A DNA stretch of 64,000 nt, taken from assembly GCF_026571515.1 (NCBI RefSeq), contig NW_026854123.1:186001-250000 (forward strand). The letters run 5' to 3'. A program made the translations under genes and the position numbers. Shown here in pieces: positions 36,201-58,900 of this stretch. Source of the stretch: Ruditapes philippinarum. Taxonomy: Eukaryota. Within the stretch, counting starts at the first letter, position 1. Each line of letters starts with the position of its first letter. A model generated the notes under the pieces. It saw nothing but the letters and a program-made list of their open reading frames with translations. It searched no databases and was not told where the DNA came from.

Positions 36201-36736
36201 AAAAATCAGTGGCATGTATGTAGATGCCTAGATTATTGTACTGTTGTTCATAATAATACACTAATAATCAAATAATTGTAGTCTACCTTACCTGTCCTCG
36301 AACCTGTACTAATCCTTTTGTCAACCGTTAATTGAATACAAAATCGCTCACTGTAAGGTGTGTGTAAGTATATGACAGTCTTTTCCATCACCAGGTAAAC
36401 AGTTACGACATCAATGGGTGTACAAGAAAGATCCGACACGTATATGTGTTACTGTTTAATTATTTTGCTATCAAATACTCTTAAACATGGTTTTGTTTCT
36501 ACATCAGTTTTCAGATATATATTTTTTTTTGAAACAGAGAAAACGAAAATTTTTAACTTTCATGATCTAGTATTATGTCCTCCATAAAACCATATACAAG
36601 TTTTTATGTACCTTCCATTAACCCTGTATTAGAAGTACATCAATCGAATGTCTGGTAAAATTACAACACAAGCAAATATTTTTGTATCGAAATGTCACTT
36701 CAAAACTATTATACTTTTTCGCTTTGTATTACTGAA

Positions 36737-37142
36737 TACGGAAGCTTCAAAGGGTCACCTCTTACGCGATCTTTTATGAGAAGATTTACGCATGTCGAAA
36801 GAATTAAGGTGCAAAGGCATGATATCTTTAGTGTTTTCGCAAAAAATAATTCGAATAAACGAGAAGATTTGAGTTAATTGGCCAAATGTTTTCTTGCAAA
36901 AACAGAAACATTACACATAACGATTAATATTTTGACGAAAAATTAATAAAAGGTGTTTTTCGAAAAAAATGTAGAGGCAATACATGATGCATTTCACTTT
37001 CTCGAAAAAGATTATGACGGAATACCTCATTCATTTCACCTTCTCGCATTAACTTTTGTTGCATTACCATAATATATTTCATTTGATGAAAAAAGTTTGC
37101 GCAATGCCTAAAGAGTATTCCGCTTTTCGTTATAAATTTTTG
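36737..37142 (+). repeat. Left TIR of the large transposon
   Basis: Reverse complement of 56490-56893. I count 3 mismatches in the outer ~175 bp; the inner part is more diverged. Confidence 0.95.
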
Positions 37143-37228
37143 CATACGATGGCTTATTATTTCGTTAAATAAGTTTTAATAAAATTGTGATATTCAAGAC
37201 TACAGCAGGCAGCGTATTTGTGGAAGTC

Positions 37229-37252
37229 ATGGAGAAAGTTCTAACAGTATTG
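37229..37252 (+). CDS. Probable first coding exon of the transposase (MEKVLTVL)
   Basis: ATG at 37229 and donor TTG|gtatga at 37253. Phase 0 matches the acceptor ttactttcag|ATA at 40796, in frame with the transposase. Confidence 0.55.
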
Positions 37253-37511
37253 GTATGATATTATAATTTTTATCATCATCATTATTAGTAGTATTACAAT
37301 TAGTTGTAATAGGAGTTGTAGAAGTGGCGGTGCTGGCGGCGGTGGTTGTAGCAGCCCAGCAAGTATCAGTCTAAGTAGGTACATGTCGTAGTGCACGCTT
37401 TGTTAGATTCTCACACATTTGCCTTTTCATGATAGCTTATTTCATAGTAAGTGATTTACGGTTGCCATTCCCTACATCATTTTGCATTTTAATCCACGGA
37501 AACAATTTCTT

Positions 37512-38350
37512 AAACAGGAGCTGTCACTGAAGTGACTTATGCCCCCGATAGGAAGCTCTGGCATAAAATCCTCAATATATGACAAAATACTGGTTATATA
37601 CGCCCGACCTCCTTTGATAAATATCATTCCTATAATAGTCTAAACAATTTTCACTTAAATTCATCATTAAAGGCCCATAACTGTGCGAAAAAAAATCATG
37701 TACAAAATCATGGCACAATGCACAACTAGACTTGGCATGCAAACAACTTTATAAATGCTCACTGAAATTTTCCAAGCGGCAAAGTTAATTTACTGAAATC
37801 AGGAACTATTTACAACTACGCTTGGTGGCAAACAATTCTGTGAATAATCCCCCCCCCCCCTCTGTTTTGGTGATGAAGCGCGGACAAGGTTATTTTACTC
37901 AAAAAATTAACATTTAAGGGGCTATAACTGTCCCGAAATAGATTCAAGCGGAAAATCATGATACTATGCACAACTAGGCATAGTGACAAACAATCCTGTG
38001 ACGTTTCACTAAAATCACCCATCAGTTTATATGATGAAGCGCAGACAAGCTTATTTCACTCGACAAATTTCCGTTAAGGGGCTATCACTGTCCCAAAATA
38101 AGAATCAAGCTAAAAATCTAGATTATATGCACAATTAGGCATAGTGACAAACATTCCTGTGAAGTGTCACTGGAATCACCCATCAGTTTTCTTGATGAAG
38201 CACAGACAAGCTTATTTTACTCGAACAATGACCAGTAAGGGGCCATATCTATGTAAAAAAAGGATTCAAGAGGAAAATCAATAACGTATGCACAACTAGA
38301 CTTGGTGACAAACAATCCTGTGAAGTTTCACTGAAATCGCCCCATACAGC
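37512..38350. mobile_element. HINE/Helentron-type non-autonomous element with ~161-bp tandem repeats, nested in the transposase intron
   Basis: Starts aacaggagctgtcac...atgccccc. Repeats gcacaa.taggcatagtgacaaaca.tcctgtga recur at ~37968, ~38129 and ~38290. Confidence 0.6.
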
Positions 38351-38865
38351 GCGAACGACAAAATAACTATATAACTTCAATTTATTTGTTCATCCAGACT
38401 CGAAAGTATTCTTTAAATTACCTTAAAATTTATGTGGGCCCCCTCCCTAAAAAATGGTTTAAAATTATTGTAAGCATGCAATAACAGGATAAACACTTAC
38501 CAAACACAGCATTTTAGGAATCTTAATTAACCTTAGTATTTACTTCAGAAAAAGGGATGCATAATTATCAATATATATGATATTATTAAGAGTAAAATCA
38601 AAGTACTTAATATACTAGTTGTAGTGCGACTGGCAACAGTAACCAATGAAGTACTTAACAAAGCATATCTCTGTTTCATTATAAAGAATTTAATTGCCAG
38701 TGCAGTCATATTAAAGAAATTCCATATGGAGGTTTTGTCAAACGTGTTATTTGAGGTAAGTATTGAAAATAATACAAAATTCAATAAAAAAAAGTTATGT
38801 AATATCAACACTAATATGTTTACCTTTCAAGGTCCTACCGATATCAAGGTCAAATTTCATTATGT

Positions 38866-39260
38866 GTTAGCTCACCTACCACGTAACAAGATGAGATTTT
38901 GTGGTCAATTTTCCCGTCGTCCATCGTCCGTAAACAAAGTTGGCGTTAACGCTCTAGCGTTTTCATTTTTGCTTTGATCTTGACTAAACTTTGTCAGAAA
39001 GTGAATCTCAATGTAAGGTAGATCATTTTATACAATGGATTATGTCAGGTGAAGGTCAAGGTCACAGTGACTTTGAAAACAAAATCAACAAATTATGATA
39101 ATTTGTTATACATAATACTATGCTTGGAACAGTTTACCAAAATATGATAAAAAGAAATTTGCAAATGTAATAATATGAGTGAAATTTGGGTGCATTTATT
39201 TGAACCATACGAAAAATTGGAAATACCATATTGGCTGCAAATCTACCAACAGGCTTGTTA
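38866..39260. mobile_element. Degenerate HINE-type fragment
   Basis: Start ttagctcacct..., then a cgtcgtccatcgtccgt microsatellite and an aaggtcaaggtcacag motif. Confidence 0.45.
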
Positions 39261-39994
39261 TTGCTAAAACGCTTCTTGAGTGCAAATGTTTTGTTGTATG
39301 CAATTTTCTTCTCTTGTGAACATGTTGCAATTCACTAGAAAGTACAATAAAAATGCAGTATTGAAGAAATGAAAAGATACTTTTAAAACACGGCCGCCAT
39401 GAACCGGTTTCAAAAATATACTTCTACACAATGCCCAATGCCCACTCTGCCATTATACAGAAGAAAGGTAACATTTTTATTGCACACTACTTATTCACCA
39501 TACCTTACCCCTTGCGACTTTTTGTTCTTCCGAAATTAATAGAAATTAAATACTAATACAAATTGCTGGAAATAGTTCTATATGATACAAGACAGACACT
39601 AATCTTGGATCTGCCTACTAGTATACCTAAATTAGCGTACCGTGACGCATTCCGGACTTAAATCATACATTTCTAGTAAAGGGGAGTACTTCGAGGGAAT
39701 GACATAATGATATAACTGGTTACTAAAATATATTACATCCAGTTCCATAATAAGGAAATATTTTCGAATACTTCCTGTTACTCTGACTTTGATAACGAAC
39801 ATTGTTTTGAGTAAATATATTTATGGGTGGTACATGCATCGCATTCGATGTTCCAAACGGTTTAAAAAGTTGTGTTTAAGAAAGTTCATAGTGATGTGTG
39901 TTAACATTTACATAGTTGTTTGAAAGAGTCGATTGTTGTTGTTGTTTTAAACTCCCTAAAACACCCCGATAATTGGAAAAGTGCCATTCAACGT

Positions 39995-40335
39995 TGCAGT
40001 AGTATTGGTCCTAGTATTGCTAGCAGCAGAAGCAGCAGCATCAGCAGCAGCAGCAGCAGTAGTAGTAGTAAGAGCAGCAGTAGTAGAAGTAGTATAAGTA
40101 GCAGCAGCAGCAGTAGTAGTAGTAGGAGCAGCAGTAGTAGAAGTAGTATAAGTAGCAGCAGCAGTAGTAGTAATTGCCTAAGAAGTAAAAGTAGTATTAG
40201 TAGCAGTAGCAGTAGCAGCAGTAGTAGTAGTAGCTGAAGTAGTAAGAGTAGTTAAGTAGTAGAAGTAGTATTTATATAAATAGTCGTCTTAGTCTTATGC
40301 GTCGTCGTCGTAGTCATCGTTGTTGTCGTTAGTCG
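39995..40335. repeat. (AGC/AGT)n and (GTC)n compound microsatellite
   Basis: Visible directly; it explains the poly-Ser ORF 39920-40237. Confidence 0.9.
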
Positions 40336-40795
40336 TAATCTTTTATTTTACATATATTAATAGAAATAGATAATATTCTTTGCAAAAGTACTGAGAGACG
40401 CCTCCACATGAGCCAAAATATTTCAAGAAATTGAATCTTTGGAAAAATTTATTAAGATCTTTAAAAAGTAAGAAGATTTAATAGTTAAGTAATTATTTAC
40501 ATGTTATGAGCGTTTAATGACTGCTTTTGCAGTATTAATCACTAGTACTGCGTTAGTAACGCAGTAAGAGATTTTTATGTATATTTTGACCTCTTTTTTA
40601 TTATTAACGTGGATTGTACATGCCGTTTGCAATGTATAAATGACTTTCTTTGTTCATTTTACAATACTTTACTTTTAGATACATTTTTAAAAATTTCATA
40701 AAAATAAGCAAGAACCTGGAGGCATGTTGCTATTTAATGTTGTTGTATTCAGTGAAAAATTCTAATAATTTACTTTGCTATTTGATTACTTTCAG

Positions 40796-42034
40796 ATACT
40801 TCTTGTGGCAATTCATATCAAGTTGTCTTATGGTATGCTACGAGATGAGCTGAGCCTACACGATACTGTCCAAAAATACTTCAATCTTGGTTATACGCAT
40901 TCGGAAATGGCTGGAATGTTTTTGTTTGTTCACCATATTGTAGTTTCCAAAACTAAAATAAAAAGAATTCTTCGACGTTTAAACTTACGTAGACGTGAAG
41001 AAAGCAACCCAGAGGATATTGCTCGTGGAATAGTACAGCTACATCGAGAGGGGTATTCCGAACTAGGATACAGAGCAGCATGGAGAATGCTTTTTTTGAA
41101 ATATGGAATCAGAGCACATCAAAATACAGTGAGAATTTGTCTTAAGGCGTTAGACCCTTGTGGAGTAGTCAACAGGAAAGCAAGGCGATTAAGACGTAGA
41201 CAATATTTCAATCGAGGCCCAAACTTCGTAATTCATGTCGACGGATATGACAAACTAAAACCATTTGGAATATCAATTCATGGAGCTATAGATGGATTTT
41301 CCCGAAAAATTCTATGGTTGAAAGCTGCACCATCAAATAAAAACCCTGCTTTTATTGCATTTTATTTCATGCAACATGTCAAGAAACGTGGTCATGTCCC
41401 AAGAATGGTAAGGGTTGATGCAGGAACTGAAAACTGTACATTAGAGAACCTTCAGATCGCACTTAGAATGTCACATACTGATAGCATGTCAGGGTACAAT
41501 TCTGTTTCTGTTGGGAGATCAACTGCAAATCAAAGAATTGAAATGCTTTGGAGTTTCCTCTCGAGAAACTTTACTTGTTATTGGAAGAACTTCTTTAAAG
41601 ATTTGATTGATCAAAACCTATTTGATAATACCGATCAGTTGCATATCGAATGCCTCAGACTTTGTTTTATGCCTCTCATTCAAAATCATCTTGACTGTTT
41701 TAAGAAATCCTGGAATATACATACGATTCGGTCACAAACTTATTGCGAGACTGTAACAGGTAAACCCAACATGATGTATTATCAGCCAAGAATGTTTGGT
41801 TATACAGATTGTTCGTTTGCAATAAATTGTTCTGAAGAAGAATTGGATAATCTGGTGCGGGTGTATACCGAGGAACCACCTATCCATGGTTGTTGCAGCG
41901 AAATGTTGCAGTTGAGTGAAAATTGGATGGGGTTAAATTCACATTTCTTTCAACAACTGAACACTGCAGAACAAGCAAGCGATGTTTATCAAAACATACT
42001 ATCATCGCTTCATAGTCGATTACTACAGAATTAG
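40796..42034 (+). CDS. DDE transposase, integrase-core type (IS3/IS481-related, IS3EU-like); main exon
   Basis: Uninterrupted 419-codon ORF. HTH-like N-terminus (KYFNLGY...KRILRRLNLRRR; LGYRAAW). Motifs RRRQYFNRGPNFVIHVDGYDKLKPFGISIHGAIDGFSRKILWL, VRVDAGTEN, NQRIEMLW and WNIHTIR. Candidate triad D156/D215/E256 in ORF-track numbering. Splice acceptor at 40795; first internal ATG at 40835. Confidence 0.92.
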   Translation: MLLVAIHIKLSYGMLRDELSLHDTVQKYFNLGYTHSEMAGMFLFVHHIVVSKTKIKRILRRLNLRRREESNPEDIARGIVQLHREGYSELGYRAAWRMLFLKYGIRAHQNTVRICLKALDPCGVVNRKARRLRRRQYFNRGPNFVIHVDGYDKLKPFGISIHGAIDGFSRKILWLKAAPSNKNPAFIAFYFMQHVKKRGHVPRMVRVDAGTENCTLENLQIALRMSHTDSMSGYNSVSVGRSTANQRIEMLWSFLSRNFTCYWKNFFKDLIDQNLFDNTDQLHIECLRLCFMPLIQNHLDCFKKSWNIHTIRSQTYCETVTGKPNMMYYQPRMFGYTDCSFAINCSEEELDNLVRVYTEEPPIHGCCSEMLQLSENWMGLNSHFFQQLNTAEQASDVYQNILSSLHSRLLQN

Positions 42035-42249
42035 GTTTTTAGTGAGTGGGAAACATTTCATGGGGTATATGACAACGGCAGTAAATAGGCCACGTGGAGT
42101 TGTTCTTATTATGTCTGTATAATGCACATGCAAATACATGTATGTTTGATAATTGTTAAAATGTTATGGAATCGAAATGTATTAATTTCCTTAAAATGAT
42201 TTCATTTATGTACATATATCTGATAGTTTGTAAGGTAACGATAGATTAA

Positions 42250-42736
42250 GAATATCGACCTCAAAGTCAATAGGGGTCATATACTAATCATGACTTGCCT
42301 CCATGCCAAAAATGAAGACTGTGGGTCAAAGGAATCATAAGTTATTGGGCGAACAAGCTTTTTGAAGTCAAGGCCCCTGTGACCTTGACCTTTGACCTCA
42401 AAATCAATAGGGGTCCTCTACTTATCATGACTAACCTTCATGCCAAATATGACGACTGTAGGTCAAAAGAATCTTACGTTATTGGGCGGACAAGCTTTTT
42501 GAAGTCAAGGCCCCTGTGACCTTGATCTTTGACCTAGTGACCTCAAATCAATAGGGGTCATCTACTAATCATGACTAACCTCCATGCCAAATATGAAGAC
42601 TAAGGGTCAAAGGAATCTTAAGTTATTGGGCGGACAAGAAAAAACCGACGGACGGCCGTACGGAAGGACAGCCGAACTGACGGACAAGCTGATTCCAGTA
42701 TACCCCCCTTACAACTTTGTTGTGCGGGGCTATAAT
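42250..42736. mobile_element. HINE-type element with ~135-bp tandem repeats
   Basis: Repeats gaccttgacctttgacct...aatcaataggggtc, then a (gacg)n-like tract and terminal hairpin tatacccccctt...gcggggctataa. Confidence 0.65.
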
Positions 42737-42763
42737 GACAGAGTGATGGAATGATGGACCTGG

Positions 42764-43969
42764 TAAAATAGATAAATACAGAATCCCTAAAGAAAGCCCA
42801 ACACGGCAAAATTGAAAATGTTGCAGGCTCGGTTTGATTGAGCCTGTTCATGGACGGTACTGGAAAGTGCAAGTTACCGTCCACGCCCCCTAGCACCGGC
42901 TTAAGCAGAATTCAACATTTAAACGTGAAATAGTAAAATTTTGAATTTAGAAACATCCGCAGATGTGTTCATACGGCGGTTATCATGGAACCTTCAATGT
43001 GACACTTCCGTGCCATTCCATGAAAAGCGGCGTATGGTCCCCAAGTAATAAAAAGCGTGTGCCCTAAACGAGAAAACAATGGGCGGAACTAAATAAAATG
43101 GCAATTTTGAAAGGGGATCAGAGGTTATGAAGCCTGCGTATCACAGATAAGACGTCAAAAGACAAATTTAAAAAGCAGGCAACATATCCTAAGGGTGATT
43201 CAACATTATTCAAGTAGGAATATTGGAACCACCCAACTAGAAAATGCCGAAAAGTTGAAACTAAAAATACCACAAGCACAACAATAATGTCGTGCTGAAC
43301 GATCTTCAAGGATCGAAAATATAACATCATTGATTAAATGTACGGGGAGACTTTTTACAGCCGCCACACGGCACAAATAACACGGATGTGATCATAAAAT
43401 AGATAAATACAGAATCCCTAAAGAAAGCCCAACACGGCAAAATTGAAAATGTTGCAGGCTCGGTTTGATTGAGCCTGTTCATGGACGGTACTGGAAAGTG
43501 CAAGTTACCGTCCACGCCCCCTAGCACCGGCTTAAGCAGAATTCAACATTTAAACGTGAAATAGTAAAATTTTGAATTTAGAAACATCCGCAGATGTGTT
43601 CATACGGCGGTTATCATGGAACCTTCAATGTGACACTTCCGTGCCATTCCATGAAAAGCGGCGTATGGTCCCCAAGTAATAAAAAGCGTGTGCCCTAAAC
43701 GAGAAAACAATGGGCGGAACTAAATAAAATGGAATTTTGAAAGGGGATCAGAGGTTATGAAGCCTGCGTATCACAGATAAGACGTCAAAAAGACAAATTT
43801 AAAAAGCAGGCAACATATCCTAAGGGTGATTCAACATTATTCAAGTAGGAATATTGGAACCACCCAACTAGAAAATGCCGAAAAGTTGAAACTAAAAATA
43901 CCACAAGCACAACAATAATGTCGTGCTGAACGATCTTCAAGGATCGAAAATATAACATCATTGATTAAA
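42764..43969. repeat. Two near-identical tandem copies of an unclassified ~575-bp structured repeat (period ~631 bp)
   Basis: 42764-43338 matches 43395-43969. Further partial copies: 45381-45649 (+), 53335-53381 with 54723-54863 (-), and 57946-58015 with 58747-58815 (-). Confidence 0.9.
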
Positions 43970-44234
43970 CACTATTTGGCCCCGCAATTTATGGAGGGGG
44001 CATATAAATATTCTTTTGGGGTCTCAGTAGGTCCTACGCATAACCACTTCACCACAGAGCTATATCTCAATGCAGATGTTTTATTTGATTATTGTATCAT
44101 TATTTGTATGATATTTTGAAATAGTATGAGGATAATGATATACCAGATTTAGTAATGATGATAAATTGTGAACAAGAGCTGACAAATTTTGACAAATGCC
44201 CATGAAAAGGTTTCTTAAGCATGCAGGTATTATG

Positions 44235-45281
44235 AAACAAGAGGGCCATAATGGCCCTGAAATCACTCATCTGTAAATCGCGGGGCCAATTTTTACCCAG
44301 GAGCTTTTCTTTGGACAAACTTGGTAGACACCCATTTGAAGATGTTTCATGATAAATATCTAAGTTCTAGCTCTGAGAAGATTTTTTAAGTTTTAACTAT
44401 ACACATATAGGGAAAAACAATGAACCCCCCCCCCCTTTCTGGGCGGGCCAATTTTATCCCAAGGGCTTTTATTTGAAACAAACTTGGTAGACACTCACTA
44501 GAAGGTAATTCATGTTTAATATCTAAATTTTAGCTTTTCGGTTTTTTTACAGAAGATTTTTTAAGTTTTTAATATATACATAAAAGGAAAATCAATGATC
44601 CCTCTGGGCGGGTCCAATTTTAACCCCAGGGCCCTGATTTGAACAAAAATGGTAGACACCCATTAGAAGATGTTCCAAGCTAAATATCTAAGCTCTAGCT
44701 CTAAAGGTTTTTTTTTTTTTAAAAAAATTTTAAGTTTTACTATATACTTAAAGGGAAAAACAATGACCCCTGGGGCGGGGCCAATTTTGACCCCAGGGCT
44801 TTTATTTGAACAAACTTGGTAGCTAAGCTCTAGCTATTTGGTTTTTTTTTAAAGAAGATATTTTAATTTTTTACTATATAGTACATAAAGGCAAAAACAA
44901 TGATCCCCTGGGGCCAGACCAATAAGGAAAAGCAATGATCCCCTTGGCTTTTATCTGAACAAATTTGATAGAAATTCACTAGAAGATGTATCATGCCAAA
45001 TATCTAAGCCCCACATCTTTGGGTTTTTTTTAAAAGAAGATATTTTAAGATTTTTCTTTCAGTTGCCATGGCAACCAGAGTTCTGCATGGAATTTAATTC
45101 TTTGAACAATCTTTAAAGGTGACCACCAAAGGACTATTCCTGTGAAGTTTGGATGCAATTGGCTTAGTGGTTTATGAGGAGATGTTGTTTAAAGTAAAAG
45201 TTTACTGACGCCAGATCGACGGCCAGACGAAAAGTGATGACAAGAGCTAACCATGTCACTTTGTGACAGGTGAGCTAAAAA
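44235..45281. mobile_element. HINE/Helentron-type element with ~165-bp satellite-like tandem repeats
   Basis: Ends aaacaagagggccataatggccctgaaatcactcatctg and gtcactttgtgacaggtgagctaaaa. Internal units ggggccaattttgaccccagggc...gaacaaacttggtag. Confidence 0.75.
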
Positions 45282-45699
45282 TAAAGTATGAAAGTAAACA
45301 AAGGGTTAGTAAGAAATTAAGAAGTGCAGTGTATCGGTTCTTGTGCACTGCACTTCTTTAATGAGATCTATCATCCTATGAAATAGATGAAGACAGAATC
45401 CCTAAAGAAAGCCCAACACGGCAAAATTGAAAATGTTGCAGGCTCGGTTTGATTGAGCCTGTTCATGGACGGTACTGGAAAGTGCAAGTTACCGTCCACG
45501 CCCCCTAGCACCGGCCCAAGCAGAACCCAACATTTAAACGTGAAATAGTAAAATTTTGAATTTAGAACATCCGCAGATGTGTTCATACGGCGGTTATCAT
45601 GGAACCTTCAATGTGACACTTCCGTGCCATTCCATGAAAAGCGGCGTATGAAGTTGCAATTCAATAGATTTTTTAGTTGAAGAGAAATGGCCTGGACAA

Positions 45700-45930
45700 A
45701 ATTATTTGTTTGTTTGTTTCATTTTACGACTTTTCCCAACAGTCATTTCAGTCATATAGGCGGGAAGTTTCCTAACCATCGTACCTGGAGAGTTACACCA
45801 GTACTAGACTACCTTCCTCTGTGCAAAGCATCTCCCAGGGATCGCCAGAGAGGTAACTGGATAAGAAGTCATCGACTCTAACCCACAGTGACTGAGTTAT
45901 GATCCGGACAAGCATTAGGGAACGCCGCTG
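45700..45930 (-). mobile_element. SINE (mollusc Meta/MD-type-like)
   Basis: (ttgt)n tail followed by caacagtcatttcagtcatat...cctaacc...cctgg...accagtact. Confidence 0.5.
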
Positions 45931-46174
45931 ACACCGACAGCGACGCCACCGACAAAAGTTACCCCATTTTTTATGTTGCCTCTTCCAGATGACACACAAA
46001 GGTGTTGTGCAAGTTCCCAAAAATCTGTTACAGTCAATTATCATGTATCATGTAAATTGATATTGGCAAATATTTTGGGTATACTTGATGTCATGTAAAC
46101 AAATAACATTGTGTTGAACATTTTTCTCGGATGACTTAAATTGACAAAAGAATATAAATGAAAATAAAGCATAC

Positions 46175-49100
46175 CTTTACTTTAGAATACAAGTAGATTC
46201 TCAACTTCAACGTCATTTTATTCTCAGCGTATTTTGCTAAAGAAAATCCTTCTTTAGGTATTATCACATTATTCACTTTACCTAGCATGAAAAGCATGCA
46301 CGATTTTTTCCCCTTTCTGCTTCTTCCATCAGGAAAAAAGAAATCTGCAGCCATTTTTACAATTTCATCATATGATATATCTTTATGTAAAGCAGTGTCA
46401 AGAATGTTTTTAGGGTCCAATTTCGATGACCTCACTTGCTTGTATCGTTTTTCTTTTGCACTGAAATGCATCCATCCGATGCTAGTTCTAAATCGAATGC
46501 GCTGGGAATCAGTCTGAAAGAAATAAACTTATATACATACAAGAGACCTGCCATCAATGGCATTTTTGCAATTACAATGATGGTGTATTGTTTTTTGTTA
46601 TTTTGCGAATACACAATGTACATGTAAACAATTTTCCTTTAAATGTTAAACTTTTTTTATTAATTTTGCCAAATTTAATTTACAAATTTTTCGGGGTTGC
46701 GTCTAATCTCATTTAAATCAAACCTTAACACTTTCTCCAGTCCCTTTAACCCTTTTATCGCTCACTTGAATTTGCAGGCTCAATACCATTTAATTATGCT
46801 ATGTGATCTTGTTTTTGACCAGAAATGACCCATAATATTATTTTAACTTGACCCAAGAATCACTAAAACAACCTTTCTGACAATTAGCTTTCATGATATT
46901 TGATCAAAACAGTAACCTCAGAGTGTTAACAAAGTGCTTCCATGTTTGGACTGTGTGACCTAGTTGTTGACCTTAGGTGACCAATTATTCGAACTTGGCA
47001 AAGAAATCATGAAAAAAATCTTTCTGATCAATTTCCAGGATATTTGGATCAAAACAGTAACCTCTAGAGTGTTAGCAAGGTTTTTCATATTTGGGCTGTG
47101 TGACCTAGATCTTAACCCCAGATGATCCATATTCACACCTTACCTTGAAATCATTTTAACAACCTATTTTATAAAATTAAGAAAATAACAATTTTTAAAT
47201 ATAGCATTAACATGTTAAGTAACAAAGATGAAAATTTATAAAAAAATATAATGTAGGTGTTGATAATGAATGTTTATTTTGAATTTGAAGTAAATCCATA
47301 AAGAAATAAGAAAGTTAAAGAATGAATAAGAAAAAATCAAAGTTTAAGGAGGAGATAATTCTGGAAATATGGATTCTAGTTTCATAAACATTGTCATATT
47401 ATTATGATGTTGGAGTTTGAAGTAATTCCTATAAGAAAGTGAAAAATACAAATTTCTCAAAAGAATCTAAGTTCAAGGAGGATATAATTCTGGAAATAAT
47501 CTTGCCGAGTATTGAATCTTCTCACAAATGTTGAGAGATAATAACAATTTATTGAAATTGACACAAATATGAAGTTTGAAGTAGATACATTAAAAAGTAA
47601 ACAAGTTATTTAAAAAACAAAAACATTTTTGTCAAAAAAAATTTAAGTTCAAGGGAGGTAATTCTGATAATTTTTGTGCTAGAGTTGTAAACCTTATTAC
47701 ATATGATGTGGTTGATGACCGAAAACTTAAAGCTGGAAGTAAATACCTTAAAAATAAATAACTTATTGTGAAAAGGCATAAAAACTAGAATGAGAAATCT
47801 TGAAATTCAGTCTATTTGTTGCCATAGCAACAAAAATTTTCAACTAAAATACTAAAACTGATTTAAAAGTTCAACTTTATTTTAACTGCAAATTTCTTAA
47901 GTTCTTAAAAAGTAGGAATTGAAGATAAAAAGTAGGAATAAAGTAGGAAAAAGAAGGAACACTTGAAAAAGTAGGAGAAAGTAGGAAAAAGTAGGAACAA
48001 TTTGACAGCCTGAATTTTCATGAACTGCAGATCTGTAAAACCTTTTGAAAAGGCAATTTCTTCATTACCTCTCTATATACAATGTATAGTATACCAACAT
48101 TGGCGAAAACATTCAATTTTTATACAAACGCTTTTTGCAATTAATAATGCTTAAACAATTTCATTTGGGCAATAGTTTTGCATTCTAAGACCATGGAAAT
48201 TATGAGGCACACAGATATTTAAGTTTTGTTGCAGACAGACTGACATACACACAGGGCCCATCACTTTATTTAAACAAAACGAGTAATGACAATTATCATT
48301 GCAGATAAAAGTAACATTTGTTACATACTTACACATATTTAATTGTTTATAGTTAGAAATTTGCTGGTGTATTCAGTCAGTTTTGTCAAATAGTAAAACC
48401 CATATACATATATCACATTAATTGTCTAAAACTTATAATGTTGGAAAGAGATTATTAAGAATGAACTGAATTCATAGGTAACTTACCTTTTTCTTCTTCC
48501 ATTTGTTCGATTGGATTGATTCAACAAGTTTCATCATGTCGTTGTAATCTGCAAATACATGTAAATCAATTAATTGTAAAATGAAATACTATATTATGTT
48601 ATAACATAATATATATTATCACACACCCGTGCCGATTTTGCGACTCCGTAAATATGGTATTGCACGGCCGTGCATATATTTTGACGTGACGTCATTAGTG
48701 TTATGCAAACGTAGTGTAAAGACGCGCCTACTGTAGGCGCGTAAACGGAAAATGACTCTTATTTCACTTTAAACGGTCTTTATTTTGGGTATGTGATAAA
48801 TAGAATATTAAATTCGTGTAAGTTCATTACTGAATTTATTGCACTCGTTGAATAAAATGATATTATGCTCGCCAGAGGCTCGCATAATATAATTTTATTC
48901 AACTCGTGCAATAAATTCAGTATTGAACTTACACTCATTCAATATCCTCTATATATTAGATAACTATTGATTTAAGTCTTGTTACTTGTAAAGGTGGATC
49001 ATTGCATCTTATAAACTAAAACAGTATAAGGGGCCTTGATGACAAGAGTCTCTGCTTCCATGTGCATTAGAACTGAAGGCAGCAACAGCCAAAATAGTTT

Positions 49101-52100
49101 CTGTAGTACTCAAACAAATGAAACAGACAGAAACATTTTTACTGTTTGTTTTTTTTTTGTTTGTTTGTTTGTTGTTTTTCTTTGTTTTTTTTCATATGGA
49201 TTAGGGACTTTTGAACACTTTTTCTTCCATCTTAAAGGGGAGTATTTTCCAAACCATTGTTCCTTTGAAGAACCAGTACAAGATTCAAGCTATCAACAAC
49301 TAACAAACAAGGCATCTCCTGGAGATCAAACATATTGAAGTGTATGCTCAAAAACCAATTAACTGATCATGAAAAGCCTAAAAGGTATCAAATCTTTATA
49401 GCAAGTTGGTTACTCATAGAAAGTGTGAAGTTTATATAAATAAGTTGATTTTATAAATATATCAATGCAAAATAAAACACAAAAAGTTCAACAATAAAAA
49501 AATAATTTAAGTAAAAAAGTTTAAGAATTTTTTTTATAAATTTTATTAACAAAATTGTAGTGATGATTTAAATCAAAAAGTTATTTTTATAACTTCCCTT
49601 TATTATATAACAGATTGTCCCTTAAAGAAAGTTTAAGATTTCATTTTTCATTTATACCATGGTGGATGTTGTGTTTTAGTCAACTGGATACAGAACTATG
49701 TTATTTCAGACTGTCAAAATTAGGTATTTTGAGGATCCAGTCTTAATATTTTTTCAAAATAAGAAAACAATACTTTGCTCACAATTAACTCCAACATCAG
49801 TTATCTCCCTTAACATTTATTTATTGCAGAAAAGTCTTTGGTACAACAGTTTAATTTTGACAGGAATTTTGTGGCAAAATACTATGTCTTTCTAGCGATG
49901 AGATATGTACTACGTCTATTATGGATAGAGAACCTGAATTTACTAATCTAAAAAAAATGTTGATTTTTTTCTTTTTTCATAAAGAAAAATTGCCTATCAT
50001 AACAAAATATAAATTCCTTCAAAAAGTCCTCTTCTTATACAGTGTAAATTGACTCAAAAGACATAAAGATTACCTTCTTCTTTTGGTTTTTCATTTCCTC
50101 TATCTGCACTATTATCATCCGAACTTCCACCTAAAATAAATGATAAATTAATTTTATGATAATTATTATGGTCATTTAGCAATATTATTTGAATATGCAG
50201 ACAGACATCTTCTGCTTTCAGGTCAGAAAGTCTGATTATTCATAGAAACAAACGCTTTAGTAGACCTTTGCAGCATGATCAAGTGGTGAATGCTTTTAAC
50301 TTGTAAGCATTTGATTGTGGTTCAAACTTCTGCCATTGGAATCCATTGTTTCTTTCACCAAGAAACTTTTTCGCTGCTAAGTACTGCTTGGTACCAGGAG
50401 CAGACCTAAGTATCTTTTAATAAGTAGTACAGCTTTCTACACAATCAAGCTAAAGCAAATTAGTATAAACTAAAATCATTTAAATAGAACCTAGGTGTAA
50501 GCTATACATTAGTACATGTATTGAGGTATCATTTCAGTTATGATACACAAAAATGCTGACCATGCTTAAAAATAAGTTTTTTTTGTTTGTTTGTTTTAGG
50601 TTTTATTTCACATTGACACAGTATTGGTCATATCGCCACGTTCCAGCTTTACTGGTGGAGGAAGACCTCAGGTGCCCTTCTGTGCATTATTTCAGACACA
50701 AACGGGCACCTGAGTAGAACCACCGACGTAAGCTAGCTGGATACTTCCTCACATGAAAGAATCCAAAAAAATAAGTGGAAGAGCTTCAAAGACTCTGATA
50801 ATTGTGTTTGACTCACTCTGCTCATTAACTTATGATAGTGAACATGAAGAATTCCCTTTTAGAGGTATATTAAACATATGACCTGAACAACCAAAATGAG
50901 CCCTATTTTAAATAGACGTGGTCTTTCCCTTGAAGCTAAGGTCAGGAAGATGCTGCTCTTTTAAGAGTTTCATAAAAGATAAACTGATCATCATATGGCA
51001 TAAAGGGGTGTATTTAATGTACAGTCAGTCATGTAAAAACAGAAATATTTTAACAAGAGCAGTTTGTTAAACCATGTGCTTGACTGTTCTCAGTTATTAA
51101 TACTTAATTATTTAAGTGAGCAGGCTACATACTAAGTGCTTGTCATAGAAAAAAAATCAAGTCACACTTTTAAATGTTTCAAATTTCCAAAAGACTTAAA
51201 ACAATGAACATGAACATGAAATATAATGGAAATCCATATAACTATTGGATATGTTCAAGAGGAGATAACCTGGCATTAACATTATTCAAGGGCTATGGCA
51301 TCAAGGGACAATAGATTAAACTAAAACCTGAATTTGAATAATTCACAGTTTGTATTTTGCATCAATTTTTCAAAAATCAAAGCAACAAGTGAAAGAGCTG
51401 TTGAAAGAAATCTTAAGTTAAAAATCAAGGGCCAAATTTAATCAAATTTACATTTGCAGAATTATCCTGCATTTCATCTTCAACTGTATTTTTAGTATTA
51501 AATGCATAACTGTTACTATTTGCCATATGCACATTATCTCATTTTAGTACTAAATAATTTGAACAATCAAAAATTTTGAAACTAAAAACAATACAACTAT
51601 GCACCAAACAGATTCTCTAAGTACCTACCTGTGAATTGTGCAGTCCACCTTTCTTCTCCACATAGTACCATAAGTGTGGTATTTGGCTCTAAGGAATCAA
51701 AATAGTCTGCCTCTACTTCTACTCCATCGGAGTTTAGCATAAGTTTAATTTCCGTTTCAGGACGAATATTTAACTTTTGTCGACCTGCAAAAATATATAT
51801 CAAGTATAGTTTCATTATTTGCTCCTGATATATATATCAGGAACATCATGAATATATATCATGTATATCATAATAAATATAAAACAAGAGGGCCATGATG
51901 TTACTTAATTGCTCCCAAGAAACAATTGTTTTTCAGTGATATAATTTTTCCAATAAATTTGTAGAAAGACAAGTCCAGCTCAACTTCAACTTGTGTCTCT
52001 AGTTAAAAAGTTTCCCGACACTGATTGTTTTTTCTTTATAGTAAAAATGATATGAACCAAGTTTGGTGATCATCCATTCATAAATTTGTGATAAAATTGG

Positions 52101-55100
52101 CCTATGACTGTGCTTCGAAAATGCAATCTTTCTATTTTTTTAGTTATCTAAAAAATTAGATAATAACACAATCTCAGTATTTAGATAACCATGTATACTG
52201 TTTGTCAGGATGACACCACCAGTCAATATTTATTTAAGATAACATAGGTATACTAGTCAACTCAACAAGAAAGATAGTTTCAGGTTGAATTATCTTACTC
52301 TCTTATAGAAACATGAAAAAAAATTGTAACTTAACTATGTGCATAGAGGGAAAAAAAAGCAAAAGATTGTTTTGATGAAATGTATTCAGTAAACAAGATA
52401 ACTCTTTTAATAAAACTATACATACAGGGTTGAAAAGTGATATTGTATGAAACAGTTCAAAATTACTTTGAACAAGTGATAACCAAGTTTACAAAATGTG
52501 ATTCTGAATAAAAATAATTGAAACTGATACTAGAATAGCACAAAGAATTAAAAATTAAAAATACATAAAGACAAGCAAGAAAAGCTTCTGAAGTTGACCA
52601 CAATTTTCAATGTAAAGATCATTGTGACCCTGACCTTTGACTTTATGACCCTAAAATAAATAGGGGTCCTGTATTGGTCTCGCCTGTTCATCCTATAAAA
52701 TTTTACAGCTATAGGTTGATATATACTTAAGTTAATGAGCAGAAACCATTTTACATTTTAAATGTAATAGTGACCTTTACCTTTGACCTTGTGACCCCAA
52801 AATCAATAGGGGTCTCCTTCCCAATATGGACAATCATCCTATGAAGTTTGAATATTGTGGGCCAAATGGAACTTAAGTTATGCTCTGATACTGTTTTTAG
52901 TTTTAAGGTATCAGTGACCTTGACCTTTGACCATATGACCTAAAAATTAACATGGGTCTTCTACCCAATATGGACAATCATCCTAGGAAGTTTAAATATT
53001 CTGGGCCAAATGGAAGTAAACATATGCTCCTGAAACTGATTTCAGTTTTATGGTAATAGTGACCTTGACCTTTAACCTTGTGACCCCAAAATCAATAGGG
53101 GTCTTCTACCCAATATGGAAAATCATGCGGCTATATCCTGGATTAGACCCCGGGGTCTAAACCAGGAGTATATATAAGGTTCATTCCGTTTTCTTTAGTG
53201 TATTATATACACGTTTTAGACCTGAAAAATACATAGGAGATTGCCAATCATGCTATGAAGTTTAGATATCATGGGCCAGATGGAACTTAAGTTATGCTCC
53301 GGAAACTGTTTTCAGTTTTAAGGTGATAGTGACCTTTCTTGTTGGGTAGTTCCAATATAATACTATTCCTCACTTGAATACCATAGGAACTCGAGAACGG
53401 GACCGTAGATTGCGGCGCATATTTTAGATCGTGTAACGGTTTTTAAAAACGTTTCTGCTACATCTAAATATCTTTAAGTATTATCCGAGCATATGGCCTC
53501 AAACAATATATTATCACTTGAACCCAATCTGTTACTTTTAAAACTGGTCAAATTTTACGGTATTATAAAATAAAGTTTCCTTTTAAAAGGAAAGGCTTGC
53601 ACAGTTGTGCCTTCATAAAGTGTTTATTTAGTTTTTTTTTTTTTGTAAAAACGAATATTTTTTGTCAAAACAATTTGAAATCTATTCTCTATTGTATAAA
53701 ACTTGTAAAGAAAATAATCAATCATAAAAATACTAACTATTCTATCATTCTGAAAAGGAAACAAGTGTGAACATTTCATTTCCAGAGAAATCATTCGTTT
53801 TGGCAGTTTCTAATTTCATTTATATAGCATCTTTATGGACAAGTAAATGCACTAAAATACTTCGTTACGTGGTACCAATTAATAAGCATGTATCAACTAT
53901 GTTACACAACCACAGATACGGTAAGGTTAATGATATGCATGGGCTATTTTTAGATTACCTCACTGCGTTCATTAGATCTAAATATAAGTTGATCATGCAC
54001 TAATATTCTCTGTGATTTGGTAAGCAAGACCACCCTTTGGAGACGTAACCATCCTCTATTGTATAAGGTATATATGTTAATTAATATACAAAACTAATAC
54101 AGACAAAAACAATTATAAAAGAAACTAACTTTTGCGTCTTGAAAAAGAATTGAAACGTAACAATTTCGTTTATAATTTATTACGGTTTAAACCGATAAAT
54201 CAAGTAAAAATAGAAATCCTATTTATATAAACAAACTGGGATTACCGAAGTAACTAAAATAGCTTAGATTTCCGTAATATTACTTCGTCTGATTCCGCAG
54301 TATGACAGATTCGCCCGAATTGTCACGATTGCAATCGGAACTTCATCGGCTATAATCATTAAACCGAAGAGTGACGGAAAGGGCCAAAAAGTTGTGATTG
54401 GCACGATTGCAGTTGGTTTCTCGTTCAATCATGCACTAACAAATGTAAGCAGGAAACCACCTAACCGGAACAAGTTTTCCAAAACAAATGGGCTTTGTCA
54501 AATGGCGGATGTCACTCCTTTTCTTTTTTCAATATACCGTAAATTTGACTGATTTTTAAATTAGCAGACTATATTAAATTGAGATAAGATAATTAAAGAC
54601 CATCCGCTCGTATAATATAAAAAGATATTCAAAGGTCGGACAAACAATATGTAAAGCTGGTACGGATTCGGATTTATGCGCCGCAATATGCAGTCCTGTT
54701 CCAGAGTTCCTATGTTGAATACTGTTAAATCACCCTTAGGATATGAAGCCTGCTTTTTAAATTTGTCTTTTGAAGTTATATGTGATATGCAGGCTTCATA
54801 ACCTCAGATCCCCTTTCAAAATTCCATTTTATTTAGTTCCGCCTATTGTTTTCTCGTTAAGGGATTCTTATTTCACTCCAAACTCCTCACAGCGGTTACG
54901 TCACGCTTTGCTACTTTAACCACTGCCACCACTGAAATCACGTGATGATAGTTGTATCATGTGACAAAAACATGGCGGCCAGTTTCAGAACGCCAAGGAT
55001 CCCATATCAAACTGGCAGATTTATAATTACATCCTTACCAGACAAAATAAGTTCAAGACACACAATTTGTTATCACTTTAAAACAAGTGCCGGATCAAAT

Positions 55101-55929
55101 CTTTTTGTGCAATCGTTCAATAACTGTTTATATTCTGCCATTGTTTACTGGTTGTTACTATGCATACGGTGTCACAGTGAAAATATCTTTCGTTATGTTT
55201 TCAAAATAATTTTTATACGTATAATTTTTTACTTTCTTGTACATTAAGCATAACTATTTAACGAAAGAAAACTAAAATGATATAAAGTATTCTATTTTAA
55301 AATTAAAAGTGAAAAAAATATATCCGACTATATTCGACCGAATTTACTTGTGGTGGCAGTGGTTACTGTACAGATCAGGGGAAGTAACCGCTGCGAGGAG
55401 TTTGATTTCACTCTATTTGATCTTTGACCTTGTGACCCCAAAATCAATAGGGGTCATATACCCAATATGGACAATCATCCTATGAAGTTTGAATTGGAAC
55501 TTAAGTTATGTTCCGGAAACCAAATTGCTAACAGACAGACGGACGGACGCTAGGGGGTAAAACATAATATGCCCGAAATTGTTTGGGGCATATAAAAACA
55601 TTTTTAACTTATAGTTAACTTATAGTATATTTTAAAAAGGGTGTCATAATTTATAAAACATTTTTGGTTTAGAAGGTTTTTGCTATCAATCTTATCTGGT
55701 CATACTTTTTCATCTCGGGTCCAATACTCGTGTCTGTGGTCCTCACCGGCCTGTGCCATATACAAAAATATCAGATAAACAGATACAGTAAAGGGAAAGA
55801 TAATGCATGTTATAATGTGAACTTACATTTTGCAATGAGATCTTCAAAACTAGTCACAATCACCCCTTTTCTTACATTTCTTGTTACATTGAAAAGTTTC
55901 AACGGAAGTTTCTGTTTTTCGTTTTCCAT
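46175..55929 (-). CDS. Multi-exon gene: CIDE-N domain fused to a transposon-associated accessory domain (>=239 aa)
   Basis: Exons 55929-55827, 51784-51629, 50130-50074, 48548-48487 and 46513-46175 all have GT-AG boundaries and compatible phases (1,1,1,0). Product: MENEKQKLPLKLFNVTRNVRKGVIVTSFEDLIAKCRQKLNIRPETEIKLMLNSDGVEVEADYFDSLEPNTTLMVLCGEERW (CIDE-N), then a linker, then RFRTSIGWMHFSAKEKRYKQVR...AADFFFPDGRSRKG...LRIYLYSK. Possible ATG-only upstream exon at 56445-56443. The 3' end is uncertain (candidate last exon 46024-45971, or read-through to the stop at 46136). Confidence 0.85.
46800..47830. repeat. Degenerate HINE/satellite-like tandem repeats (intronic)
   Basis: Recurrent gatcaaaacagtaacctc.agagtgtta and aagttcaaggaggatataattctg units. 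Confidence 0.5.
47908..48012. repeat. (AAAGTAGGA)-type short tandem repeat, possibly a MITE subterminal array
   Basis: About seven aaagtagga-like units ending at gacagcctg. Confidence 0.6.
48612..48955. mobile_element. Foldback element (possibly Crypton-like), intronic
   Basis: Long hairpin gtgtaagttcattactgaatttattgcac...ctcgccagaggctcg...gtgcaataaattcagtattgaacttacac (48800-48955). Inverted pair ttatcacacaccc / gggtatgtgataa. Confidence 0.6.
50280..50475 (+). mobile_element. Degenerate tRNA-derived SINE
   Basis: A-box-like aagtgg and B-box-like ggttcaaac, then caagaaacttt...agtactgcttggtaccagga and tail aattagtataaactaaa. Confidence 0.5.
50585..50765 (-). mobile_element. Truncated SINE
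   Basis: (ttgt)n tail, then ttccagctttactggtggaggaagacctcaggtgccc...gggcacctgag (hairpin). Related to 13590-13735. Confidence 0.55.
53382..54714. mobile_element. Non-autonomous TIR element, P-element-like
   Basis: TIRs cataggaactc...attgcggcgcata / tatgcgccgcaat...gagttcctatg. Perfect 8-bp TSD TTGAATAC at 53374-53381 and 54715-54722. Confidence 0.8.
54879..55404. mobile_element. MITE with 9-bp TSD (Mutator-like)
   Basis: TIRs caaactcctcacagcggttac / gtaaccgctgcgaggagtttg. TSD ATTTCACTC at 54870-54878 and 55405-55413. Inner inverted pair taaccactgccaccac / gtggtggcagtggtta. Confidence 0.8.
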
Positions 55930-56489
55930 GCCGGCACACTGAAACTGAAATAAAAAATGGAGTAACGGAATATAAGGGAAGTAACTGTACATATTACAAA
56001 CTTCATTCTCATCTTTCCATATACTGTACTGTATAGCCGATTTGGTTCATTCAAAAAATTATTTATTTATTTAGATCTATTTATTACTTTTTTATTTATG
56101 AATTTATACGTAAAAGGGTCGAAAGAGAAAAGATTGATAAATTTGGATCTTTCAAACAGAACATTACTTCCAGGTATTCCAAATGAAAAGCAATTTATTC
56201 GCATCAACAGAAATTCAGAGTTCCTTGGATCGTGGACCCTTCGGGATTTCTAAAGCCTTGCAACAGAATGTCTACAGTTTTATCAGCAAATGATAGTACC
56301 AAATGCATGGATATGTGAAAAAAATTGACCGACTGACATGATGCATATTTCTATCAAAATGATTCCCTATTCAGAAAATAAGCCTAATTATGAAAGCATA
56401 TCATGCATTTGTAAACAGTTTAGCAAAAACAGGAGAACTTACCATTTTTTCTTCTCGAATGGCCTCGTGTCCAAAAATGACGATCTCGA

Positions 56490-56893
56490 CAAAAATATAA
56501 CGAAAAGCGGAATATACTTTAGGCATTGCGCAAACATTTTTTCATCAAACGATATGTATGAGGGTAATGCATCAAAAGTTTTTGCGAGAAGGTGTAATGT
56601 ATAAGTTATTGCGTCAATTTTTTTTGAGAAAGTGAAATGTAGCATGTATTGCGTCTACATTTTTTTCGAAAAAACACATTTTTTTAATTTCTCGCAAAAA
56701 ATTTACTCGTAATGTGCAATGTTTCTGTTTTTGCAAGAAAACATTTGGCCAATTAACTCAAATCTTCTGGTTTATTCGAATTATTTTTTGCGAAAACACT
56801 AAAAATATCATGCCTTTGCACCTTAATTCTTTCGACTTGCGTAAATCTTCTCATAAAAGATCGCGTAAGAGGTGACCCTTTGAAGCTTCCGTA
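56490..56893 (-). repeat. Right TIR of the large transposon
   Basis: Reverse complement of 36737-37142; ends gaagcttccgta. Confidence 0.95.
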
Positions 56894-58900
56894 ACTGATT
56901 ACTTGTGTCATCATAAAAACGAATAAGATATACATGAAATAAGCAGACATTTCTAAGGCGCAATTTAAGCAGAATAACAGAAAGCGAAAAACGTCTTAAA
57001 TTTTAACTTATTTGTCATTGCTAACACATTCTTTTCTAAAGAACTTATGCATGGAATTCCAGCTTTTGTTTATTTCATATGGCTGCACTGACACAGTTTA
57101 ATAAAGGATACTTTAGATATTAATTACGTATGACATGTTTAAGCAATCTTTATTAAAGTTTGTGTGCTATGCGAGATAAACGAGAATAAAAATTAAAACA
57201 TGAACTATTAATGGAAACCATTATCAGCATGAAATTGCTTTACATATTCGTTCATTTGTTGATAACAATGTATTGTCAGTGCATTAACATTCTTGTTATA
57301 CGTAATACACATCTAAGGAATCATCTATAAAACTGTCGTGCCATTTTATTTCTATTTTATGAACGCTACGGTTAAGCTTGTTCGCATATCTTTCTTAACA
57401 ATCGTTTTATTTATCCTTTGATCTTTTTCATGGATCGCACGTCTTTCTCGCTATATGCTTTAGCATTTGATACACGTATTAAGCCAGCATCAGTGTGCTT
57501 TTTTTAATCGAAATAGGATGTTGCGCTGCTAATTTTGAAGGAGTCATTTGAAATTAAAATACTACTAAATTTTAAGATTACAAAATGTCAGGAATAACAC
57601 AAGAATACTCGTAGTGATAACGAACACAATTATTTTATTGAATTCACTCTTTATCTAGTATTTCTACAATTATGTTGCATATTTTGTGCTTAATAAAAAA
57701 ATAAGAAAACAATGTGTTAATCGTTTCATTTAATTCCTAGATGTAGATAAACTATACGCGTATATATCAAAATCTGGAAAAAAAGTGATCCAACTTGTTT
57801 TTTATTGTGGCAAATAATTCGTATTAATTTCCTGAAAATTGTTTTATTATCCTATTTGTGTCATGTAGGAAAGTTTGGTTGAGTCTTTATAATTGTGTTG
57901 CTGATAATTCTTTGGTTATTAAACCTTAAATTTTAATTCACATGTACGAACACATCTGTGGATGTTTCTAAATTCAAACTATTACCTTTTTTATGTTTTA
58001 ATGTTGAATTTTCCTTATGAGGTAAATAAAGGCAGGATGCGACACTTTGGAAACGTTCGAGTAGTGTCGTGAATTTCCTTTTAATTTTATTTTATAATCC
58101 AAGACATTGGAAAAAAGAACACATTTCTTTTTTGAATATTAATTTATTTTATAGCACAACAAGTTTTAATCCATTTAAACTATTTTATATAATAATCACA
58201 AATATAATCCAATTATTTTATTCAACAACCTTTATTAACAAAACAGCCTTACTAATGTTATTTCACCCACATTTTCCTTATAAAAAGTCCCTATATATAT
58301 ATAGCAAAACATTCCCGCCTTTACGATTCAGCATGGTAAGAAAAACATGAAAACATTAATATCTCGTGCACAATAATACACCGTCGGGGAACTAAAACAA
58401 TAGAACTTTAAAGGCATGGTGATATATGATGTAACTTTACTAAGAAAATGGTTCTTGATAAAAAATAGTAGTATATTAAGATACATGTATATCGCAATAT
58501 CTGCGACAAGAAGCTTCTTGAAAATTGGCATGTGAAAAGTTGACCATATATCAAATTGTATTTCGTTGATTTTATTCCCATAGTGTTAGCTATTTTGATT
58601 ACACATGACGTCAAAATGGTCCACCGAAGCCCGTTTTAGATTTTGACATCGTTGCGTATCATTGGCAACTTTTACGGGTATCACAACGCCATACGTGGAC
58701 AAATATCATACATTCTACAGTATTTGTCGGAAATTATTTCTTGAAGAGGCTCAATCAAACCAAACCTGCAAATATTTTCTATTTGGACGTTTTGGGCTTT
58801 CTTTATGGATTTTGTTTTTTTACCCTTTTTAGGGTACTACCACTTTAATGGGCACTATACATGTAAGGAACTGAAAAATTGTCAACTTACGTCAGATATT

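Follow-up and report, generated by a model that had tools for sequence, protein, structure and literature searches.

A convergent gene joining CIDE-N to a predicted ubiquitin-like domain within an IS3EU-like transposon of Ruditapes philippinarum

The subject of this analysis is a transposon of 20,157 bp that occupies positions 36737-56893 of a stretch of 64,000 nucleotides from the clam Ruditapes philippinarum (RefSeq contig NW_026854123.1, positions 186,001 to 250,000). We call the whole stretch the window: positions without a prefix refer to it, and loci elsewhere in the genome carry a contig handle such as C3853. The transposon contains two genes that point towards each other, a transposase and a spliced companion gene, whose product joins a CIDE-N domain to a domain without a name, here the X domain, for which a ubiquitin-like fold is predicted. 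We put at about 0.8 the probability of the following reading, taken as a whole: the element is a single insertion of an IS3EU/GingerRoot-type cut-and-paste DNA transposon, and its companion gene, far from being a chance capture, is the conserved convergent second gene of a clam transposon lineage.

IS3EU is a superfamily that has been named but barely studied. If the reading is right, the clam genome holds a large lineage of IS3EU elements with a fixed two-gene design, in which the second gene is a ubiquitin-like domain wired to CIDE-N or to RING/HECT modules. New in this analysis are CIDE-N as a head and RING as a tail of X, the support from RNA and the empty-site comparison.

Boundaries, insertion and transposase

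The element is delimited by a target site duplication (TSD) and by terminal inverted repeats (TIRs), and it has one long open reading frame (ORF):

36731-36736: left TSD, ACTGAA, read directly from the letters
36737-37139, plus strand: left TIR, about 403 bp, terminus TACGG, with 97-99% matches at at least 25 other loci
40835-42034, plus strand: transposase gene, rva_4 integrase core, 399 amino acids from its ATG (Pfam PF24764, 8.6e-34)
56491-56893, minus strand: right TIR of about 403 bp, ending in CCGTA; both TIRs of C6137 match it at 97%
56894-56899: right TSD, ACTGAT, read directly from the letters and from the overlap at the empty site

A first-pass annotation, made from the sequence of the window, had proposed TIRs of about 405 bp with TAC...GTA ends and a 6-bp TSD matching at five positions of six, and both proposals hold. 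The arms 36737-36969 and 56661-56893 are 93% complementary across 233 nt, and a weaker similarity, broken by indels, reaches 37139 on the left and 56491 on the right. The element begins with TACGGAAGC and ends with GCTTCCGTA, and these termini, TACGG..CCGTA, are found in the window copy and at no fewer than 40 termini of its TIR family. The agreement of ACTGAA with ACTGAT has a chance probability of 0.0046, a figure that can be given because the TSDs of the family show no target consensus.

This family is mobile and has been recently active. A search of the 1.4-Gb genome with the left TIR gave at least 43 matches, mostly at 95-99%, and the five other full copies recognised by their paired ends all have perfect 6-bp TSDs: GTGGGG (C3853), CTCAAC (C13959), ACCGAC (C9365), GAAAAA (C4070) and ATCATG (C6137). 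Across the family, left and right TIRs are about 90% identical between sides and 97-99% identical within a side; since the difference is systematic, TIR divergence cannot date a copy. The right-type TIR of the window is found at both ends of C6137.

The insertion can be compared with a site that lacks it. The segment C2610:131295-144393, on the same contig but about 80 kb upstream and outside the window, is a diverged segmental duplication, 73-91% identical to the flanks of the element (35237-36736 and 56894-57735). In its part C2610:141690-144393, the match to the left flank, which ends at 36736, stops at position 142867, and the match to the right flank, which starts at 56894, begins at position 142862: the two share exactly 6 bp and leave nothing in between. 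The flank alignments thus describe an empty site in which the target is present once and the companion gene is absent. The single ACTGAW that the first-pass annotation suggested looking for has its counterpart in this diverged paralogous site, judged from the alignment coordinates at C2610:142862-142867 and not from its letters. With the TSD, the empty site makes 36737-56893 one transposed unit, inserted once with duplication of 6 bp of target.

The transposase belongs to an ORF on the plus strand, 40775-42034, which is open over 419 amino acids from a TTG at 40775 and is the only long ORF inside the element. The residues D136, D195 and E236 are present, and every column that is invariant among 12 homologues is kept; with an intact transposase, 99% identical in protein, at C3853, this agrees with the DDE ORF that had been called intact. 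Those of its homologues that have a name come from bivalves, Holothuria and Nasonia and are annotated as "integrase core domain-containing", and a metagenome scan with the transposase gave no match. Among NCBIfam families it has weak yet specific matches to IS481 (8e-7) and IS3 (1.6e-5), both far below the family cut-offs, and a Pfam scan found no zinc-finger match.

According to the literature, IS3EU elements end in TA..TA and duplicate 6 bp of target (PMC10045372), and those of fungi have TAYGG..CCRTA ends, with a second gene in opposite orientation (PMC12730594). The window element shares with IS3EU/GingerRoot (PMC6839031, 2019), a superfamily reported from oysters, fish, cnidarians and acorn worms, the TA..TA termini in their TAYGG..CCRTA form, the 6-bp TSDs, the long TIRs, and an integrase-type DDE enzyme of IS3/IS481 affinity without an HHCC finger. 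The signature on which the IS3EU label had first been proposed is accordingly present, both at the TACGG..CCGTA ends of the window copy and in the perfect duplications of the five other full copies.

The companion gene and its two domains

The companion gene is annotated in RefSeq as LOC132739013 (protein XP_060582635.1). It runs from 55929 to 46139 on the minus strand, convergent to the transposase and inside the TIRs, as had been claimed, and consists of five exons:

55827-55929, minus strand: exon 1, from the ATG (MENEK...), N-terminal third of CIDE-N (Pfam CIDE-N positions 3-30)
51629-51784, minus strand: exon 2, C-terminal two thirds of CIDE-N (Pfam CIDE-N positions 29-76, 3.8e-12), with an RNA joint to exon 3
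50074-50130, minus strand: exon 3, 57 nt, skipped in isoform X2 and present in isoform X3 (RNA contigs, RefSeq)
48487-48548, minus strand: exon 4, 62 nt (joints 46513>48487 and 48548>50074 in runs X6 and X9)
46139-46513, minus strand: exon 5, the ubiquitin-like X domain (AlphaFold2 model, beta-grasp matches)

The gene is real, spliced and expressed. Its exons 5-4-3-2 are joined in single contigs of runs X6 and X9, which come from two different studies; the RNA label of the runs is a guess, and it is the spliced form that shows the contigs to derive from RNA. The isoforms X2 and X3 of RefSeq together use the five exons, with a start at an upstream in-frame ATG at 55992, and the junction of exons 1 and 2 is taken from the RefSeq model. 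Read from the sequence, all introns are GT..AG and all five exons are in phase, so that the phase-consistent five-exon gene of the first-pass annotation is confirmed, with RNA joints for exons 2 to 5. In what follows, searches with the spliced product used XP_060582635.1, and exons were searched singly. A word-based protein search with the RefSeq product returned only another isoform of the same gene.

The spliced product matches Pfam CIDE-N (PF02017) with 74.9 bits, against a cut-off of 23.5, over model positions 3-76 of 76: the element does contain the apoptosis-family interaction domain that had been read in it, and in full. The nearest solved relative of this head is the CIDE domain of DREP2 (4e-14), followed by DREP3 and CIDE-3, and it is also similar in sequence to ICAD and DFF40. 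The likeness to DFF40/CAD, DFF45/ICAD, CIDE-A/B/C and Drosophila DREP1-4 lies in the full-length CIDE-N; as at other CIDE-N loci of the same genome, an intron splits the domain. Unlike these proteins, the clam product has no nuclease, DFF-C or CIDE-C domain, its partner is ubiquitin-like, and its gene lies in a transposon.

No Pfam family matches exon 5 or 64 of its relatives, and HMMER, run in full on 1.8 billion representative proteins, finds 114 relatives of X. The AlphaFold2 model, computed with 63 relatives aligned, is predicted with a mean local confidence (pLDDT) of 93 and a global score (pTM) of 0.85, and has the beta-beta-alpha-beta-beta arrangement of a ubiquitin-like beta-grasp; all top Foldseek and VIA-align matches are ubiquitin-like domains. 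The best are the RAWUL/ULD of PCGF/RING1B (Z 9.4, root-mean-square deviation 2.0 over 79 residues) and ATG5 (UblA, Z 9.0), scores that exceed by little the Z 7-8 reached by ubiquitin folds in general. With 6-11% sequence identity to X, RAWUL/ULD and ATG5 share its fold and not its family, and no sequence-level membership in RAWUL or in any named ubiquitin-like family was found. RAWUL resembles X in being likewise found in RING proteins, where it mediates protein-protein assembly. On the model we are confident that X is an un-named ubiquitin-like domain.

In other animals the domain occurs in several combinations. Proteins of about 720 amino acids with the order SAM-X-HECT are found in Clytia, Hydractinia, Ptychodera and Astyanax, a CIDE-N-X-RING protein of 427 amino acids in Mytilus, and X with a RING tail in Ostrea. 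The X proteins of Mytilus and Astyanax are present in many copies, more than 90% identical and on different chromosomes. The Mytilus relative, annotated "DNA fragmentation factor 45 kD alpha", ends in a RING finger.

Pairing with transposases, and the alternatives

A profile search of the genome with the X domain yields about 80 loci, the window included. The rva_4 transposases were taken from two partial lists, covering 104 of 1218 and 150 of 742 candidates and together about 200 loci. Among those listed, one is within 35 kb of 33 of the roughly 79 other X loci, where 0.8 are expected by chance (P about 2e-41). Tail-to-tail orientation is found in 32 of these 33 pairs (P about 1e-18). Their median gap is 4.75 kb; the gap measures 2.4-7 kb in 20 tail-to-tail pairs, and 4.1 kb in the window. 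Several X families are multi-copy, with constant gap and identical scores on different contigs, for example C4914, C10152 and C15112, which implies that transposase and X move together. The CIDE-N domain had been read as part of a cargo of which no description was known; given the pairing at 32 other loci, the gene is no odd cargo.

The three components CIDE-N, X and transposase are also together at C8738, C1065 and C2386. The three C8738 proteins share only 45% (the transposase), 42% and 32% identity with their window counterparts, and downstream of the X exon, on the same strand, lies a C3HC4 RING-finger ORF (C8738:223825-224037, minus strand), which makes a CIDE-N-X-RING gene beside a transposase. 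To judge from the predicted proteins, CIDE-N is one of several interchangeable heads on X. The C8738 locus also reveals a second, multi-copy IS3EU-like family. It starts with TATGG, its TIR measures about 307 bp (C8738:218964-219270), and its transposase begins only 920 bp inside; many of its copies, at 98-99%, are TIR-only and resemble miniature inverted-repeat transposable elements (MITEs).

Several observations weigh against the conserved companion gene or against the assignment of the element. The X gene is known to be inside TIRs for the window copy, and the other paired loci are known by gene positions; a search for inverted repeats in 30 kb of C8738, companion gene included, gave none, and the right end of that element probably lies beyond this stretch. 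The IS3EU assignment rests on the ends, the TSD and the profile matches of the transposase. Within its own family, the window copy alone keeps the whole companion gene: a genome search found no second copy of exons 2-5, and only the window insertion shows the gene moving as a whole with these TIRs. In their middle the common copies have some 7 kb of non-coding DNA that the window does not contain, without coding potential and without similarity to 45650-52600, and which of the two middles is ancestral we infer from a breakpoint in exon 1, discussed below. The ends of the window copy have different nearest relatives, C3853 for the left part (97.5%) and C6137 for the right TIR (97%), so it may have arisen by recombination between two subfamilies.

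The 3' end of the gene adds to these difficulties. In three runs, the RNA contigs use a donor inside exon 5, after 46175 (minus strand, AAG|GT); the sequence that follows, 170-645 nt long (560-645 nt in the contigs of X6 and X9), was not located in 46100-52000, and a three-frame reading of 42030-46180 gave no convincing exon downstream of the donor. The RefSeq models instead read through to a stop at 46136-46138, 14 codons past X. A tblastn search found no RING exon anywhere in the window, whose copy is without a RING or HECT tail.

The several loci with TIR, transposase and CIDE-N gene that the first-pass annotation had hoped for were not found in this family, whose other copies keep only parts of exon 1. 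On the whole its interpretation is partly supported: the single unit, the IS3EU signature, the intact transposase and the place of the CIDE-N gene inside the TIRs are borne out. The sole other trace of exons 2-5 is a decayed, 83%-identical fragment at C12746. There, two X-domain exons stand in tandem (C12746:249886-253167): one is open, with 121 amino acids, and 36% identical to the X of the window, and the other is the decayed DNA paralogue, at 83%, of 45887-47178, with the same flanking satellites as in the window.

The single-copy state of exons 2-5 within the family would suit a one-off capture, or transduplication, of a host CIDE-N gene by this one copy, the gene being then unrelated to the biology of the family. 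The position of the intron in CIDE-N, the same in Pfam coordinates (29/30) as at C2779, a CIDE-N locus without a listed transposase, also fits an origin from a host gene, at the DNA level and at some point. The right end of the family tells otherwise: in at least seven copies it holds the start of exon 1, from the ATG through codon 12, along with the sequence upstream of that exon. Five copies are broken at the same base, 55895, after codon 12, and the deletion derivative C6137 keeps exon 1 whole with the start of intron 1, so that two independent derivative lineages retain exon 1. This shared breakpoint, together with the whole exon 1 of C6137, suggests that the gene was in the progenitor of the family, and that the common copies descend from a deletion derivative that was broken inside exon 1 and lost the gene. 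The X genes that lie tail-to-tail with rva_4 transposases at 32 other loci, and the diverged recurrence of the layout of CIDE-N, X and transposase at C8738, are equally at odds with a single capture, which we regard as quite improbable.

The X genes could also be expanded host genes, of the apoptosis or ubiquitin repertoire of bivalves, beside which rva_4 elements tend to land. About 46 of the 79 or so X loci have no transposase in the partial lists, RefSeq annotates X genes as ordinary loci in several species, and the window gene is expressed in several studies. Unpaired loci are nevertheless expected, because the lists cover only the fractions of the candidates given above, and a habit of landing nearby accounts poorly for 32 of 33 pairs in tail-to-tail orientation, for a gap of 2.4-7 kb in 20 of them, and for near-identical pairs that recur on different contigs. 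Nor does it agree with a window gene that lies inside TIRs and is absent from the empty site; we hold this explanation to be quite improbable.

That the left end of one element and the right end of another bracket host DNA with a CIDE-N gene, as the grouping of the left TIR with one subfamily (97-99%) and of the right TIR with another (97% to C6137 against about 90% to the other copies) and the imperfect TSD might suggest, is largely refuted by the exact 6-bp overlap of the flanks at the paralogous empty site, with nothing between, by the low chance probability of the TSD match in a family without target consensus, and by exon 1, which is itself family sequence.

A possible role, and the inner layout of the element

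Under the reading of a conserved companion gene, the transposase would presumably bind the long TACGG-ended TIRs and move the element by cut-and-paste. The companion protein, whose function we infer only from its sequence, would act for the element on host proteins and not on DNA: its CIDE-N head may dock, through homotypic CIDE-CIDE contact, on the DFF40/DFF45-type apoptotic nuclease system of the host, as the similarity to DREP2, ICAD and DFF40 suggests, and X may link this head to ubiquitin-type machinery, directly so in the relatives with RING or HECT. The effect could be, for example, a blunted cell-death response to the breaks of transposition, which we put forward as a hypothesis only. 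The heads (CIDE-N, SAM) and the tails (RING, HECT) of the X gene appear to vary between families. It is conceivable, though rather doubtful, that animal IS3EU/GingerRoot elements (in molluscs, cnidarians, hemichordates and fish) encode a modular effector directed at the host, in which one ubiquitin-like adaptor takes exchangeable heads that polymerise (CIDE-N, SAM) and tails that are enzymes (RING, HECT); the CIDE-N form would then be the first mobile-element protein aimed at the CAD/ICAD nuclease system, muting the cell-death response to its own DNA breaks.

The clam lineage differs from described IS3EU/GingerRoot elements in carrying a convergent gene with a ubiquitin-like domain and variable heads and tails: the searchable literature describes no companion gene for animal members, and searches of it on CIDE-N with transposases or bivalves, and on IS3EU with ubiquitin, turned up no earlier description. 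The closest parallel is in fungi, where two- and three-gene IS3EU elements (transposase, alpha-kinase, TET/JBP; Kojima 2025, PMC12730594) have the same superfamily signature, a second gene opposite to the transposase, and extra genes thought to act on the host, there by removal of DNA methylation. The fungal second gene is an alpha-kinase, with a TET/JBP dioxygenase between, in contrast to CIDE-N and X in the clam; a weak Atlas match to a Basidiomycota cluster is the only hint of an X domain in the fungal kinase gene. PIF/Harbinger (Myb-like ORF2) and CACTA (TnpA) likewise keep a conserved second gene with the transposase across diverged families. Their accessory proteins bind DNA and are needed for transposition, whereas nothing in CIDE-N or X suggests DNA binding, and many clam copies, unlike those elements, keep the transposase without the companion.

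If the companion acts in this way, it opens a concrete way to test how a DNA transposon may manipulate the cell it lives in. The reading would also explain why mussel and cavefish annotations contain many near-identical copies of "uncharacterized" genes of the types SAM-X-HECT and CIDE-N-X-RING, and it identifies a source of mis-annotation: the clam transposon gene stands in RefSeq as an ordinary locus, and its Mytilus relative carries the name of a DNA fragmentation factor.

Between and within its two genes, the element is laid out as follows:

36737-42258, plus strand: left part shared with the family, 97.5% identical to C3853 and 90-95% to C9365, C4070 and C13959; every match stops at 42258
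37796-38342: tandem repeats in this left part, with self-overlapping matches in all copies
42259-45650: repeat-rich filler, with a 484-bp repeat in three copies and satellites
52600-53336: satellite array in intron 1 of the companion gene, from repeat self-matches
53568-54495: nested repeat of about 930 bp in intron 1, with at least 30 genome copies at 91-99%
54878-55405: nested repeat of 527 bp in intron 1, with 99% copies elsewhere in the genome
55774-56893, minus strand: right part common with other copies, comprising the region upstream of exon 1, exon 1 and the right TIR, from copy comparison

Within the right part, 55895-56893 is common to C13959, C9365, C5004, C4070 and C2101 at 90-93%, and 55774-56282 to C6137 at 94%. 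The nested repeats are real, and the element has indeed been inflated by insertions, as first proposed. In the filler, the 484-bp repeat occupies 42764-43247, 43395-43878 and 45383-45650, and the satellites 42259-42626 and 44235-45282. The same filler satellite adjoins X-domain exons at other loci: that of 44235-45282 recurs beside or inside the companion genes of several unrelated IS3EU-like families (among them at C8738:231794-235261), a recurrence that recalls the tandem repeats within a Hydractinia IS3EU-like repeat (PMC11934779).

Three smaller features complete the picture. In intron 2, a short repeat at 50630-50830 has very deep coverage in the RNA runs and a loose-end consensus that is tRNA-like (GGGATTCGAACCC-like), and is probably a short interspersed nuclear element. 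Intron 3 contains, at 48796-48954, a near-perfect palindrome with 78-nt arms, 85% complementary, and a 3-nt loop; its coverage in the RNA runs is heavy, and it resembles a foldback of MITE type. The third feature, an ORF of 105 amino acids rich in serine (39920-40237), lies over a simple repeat between left TIR and transposase and is probably non-coding.

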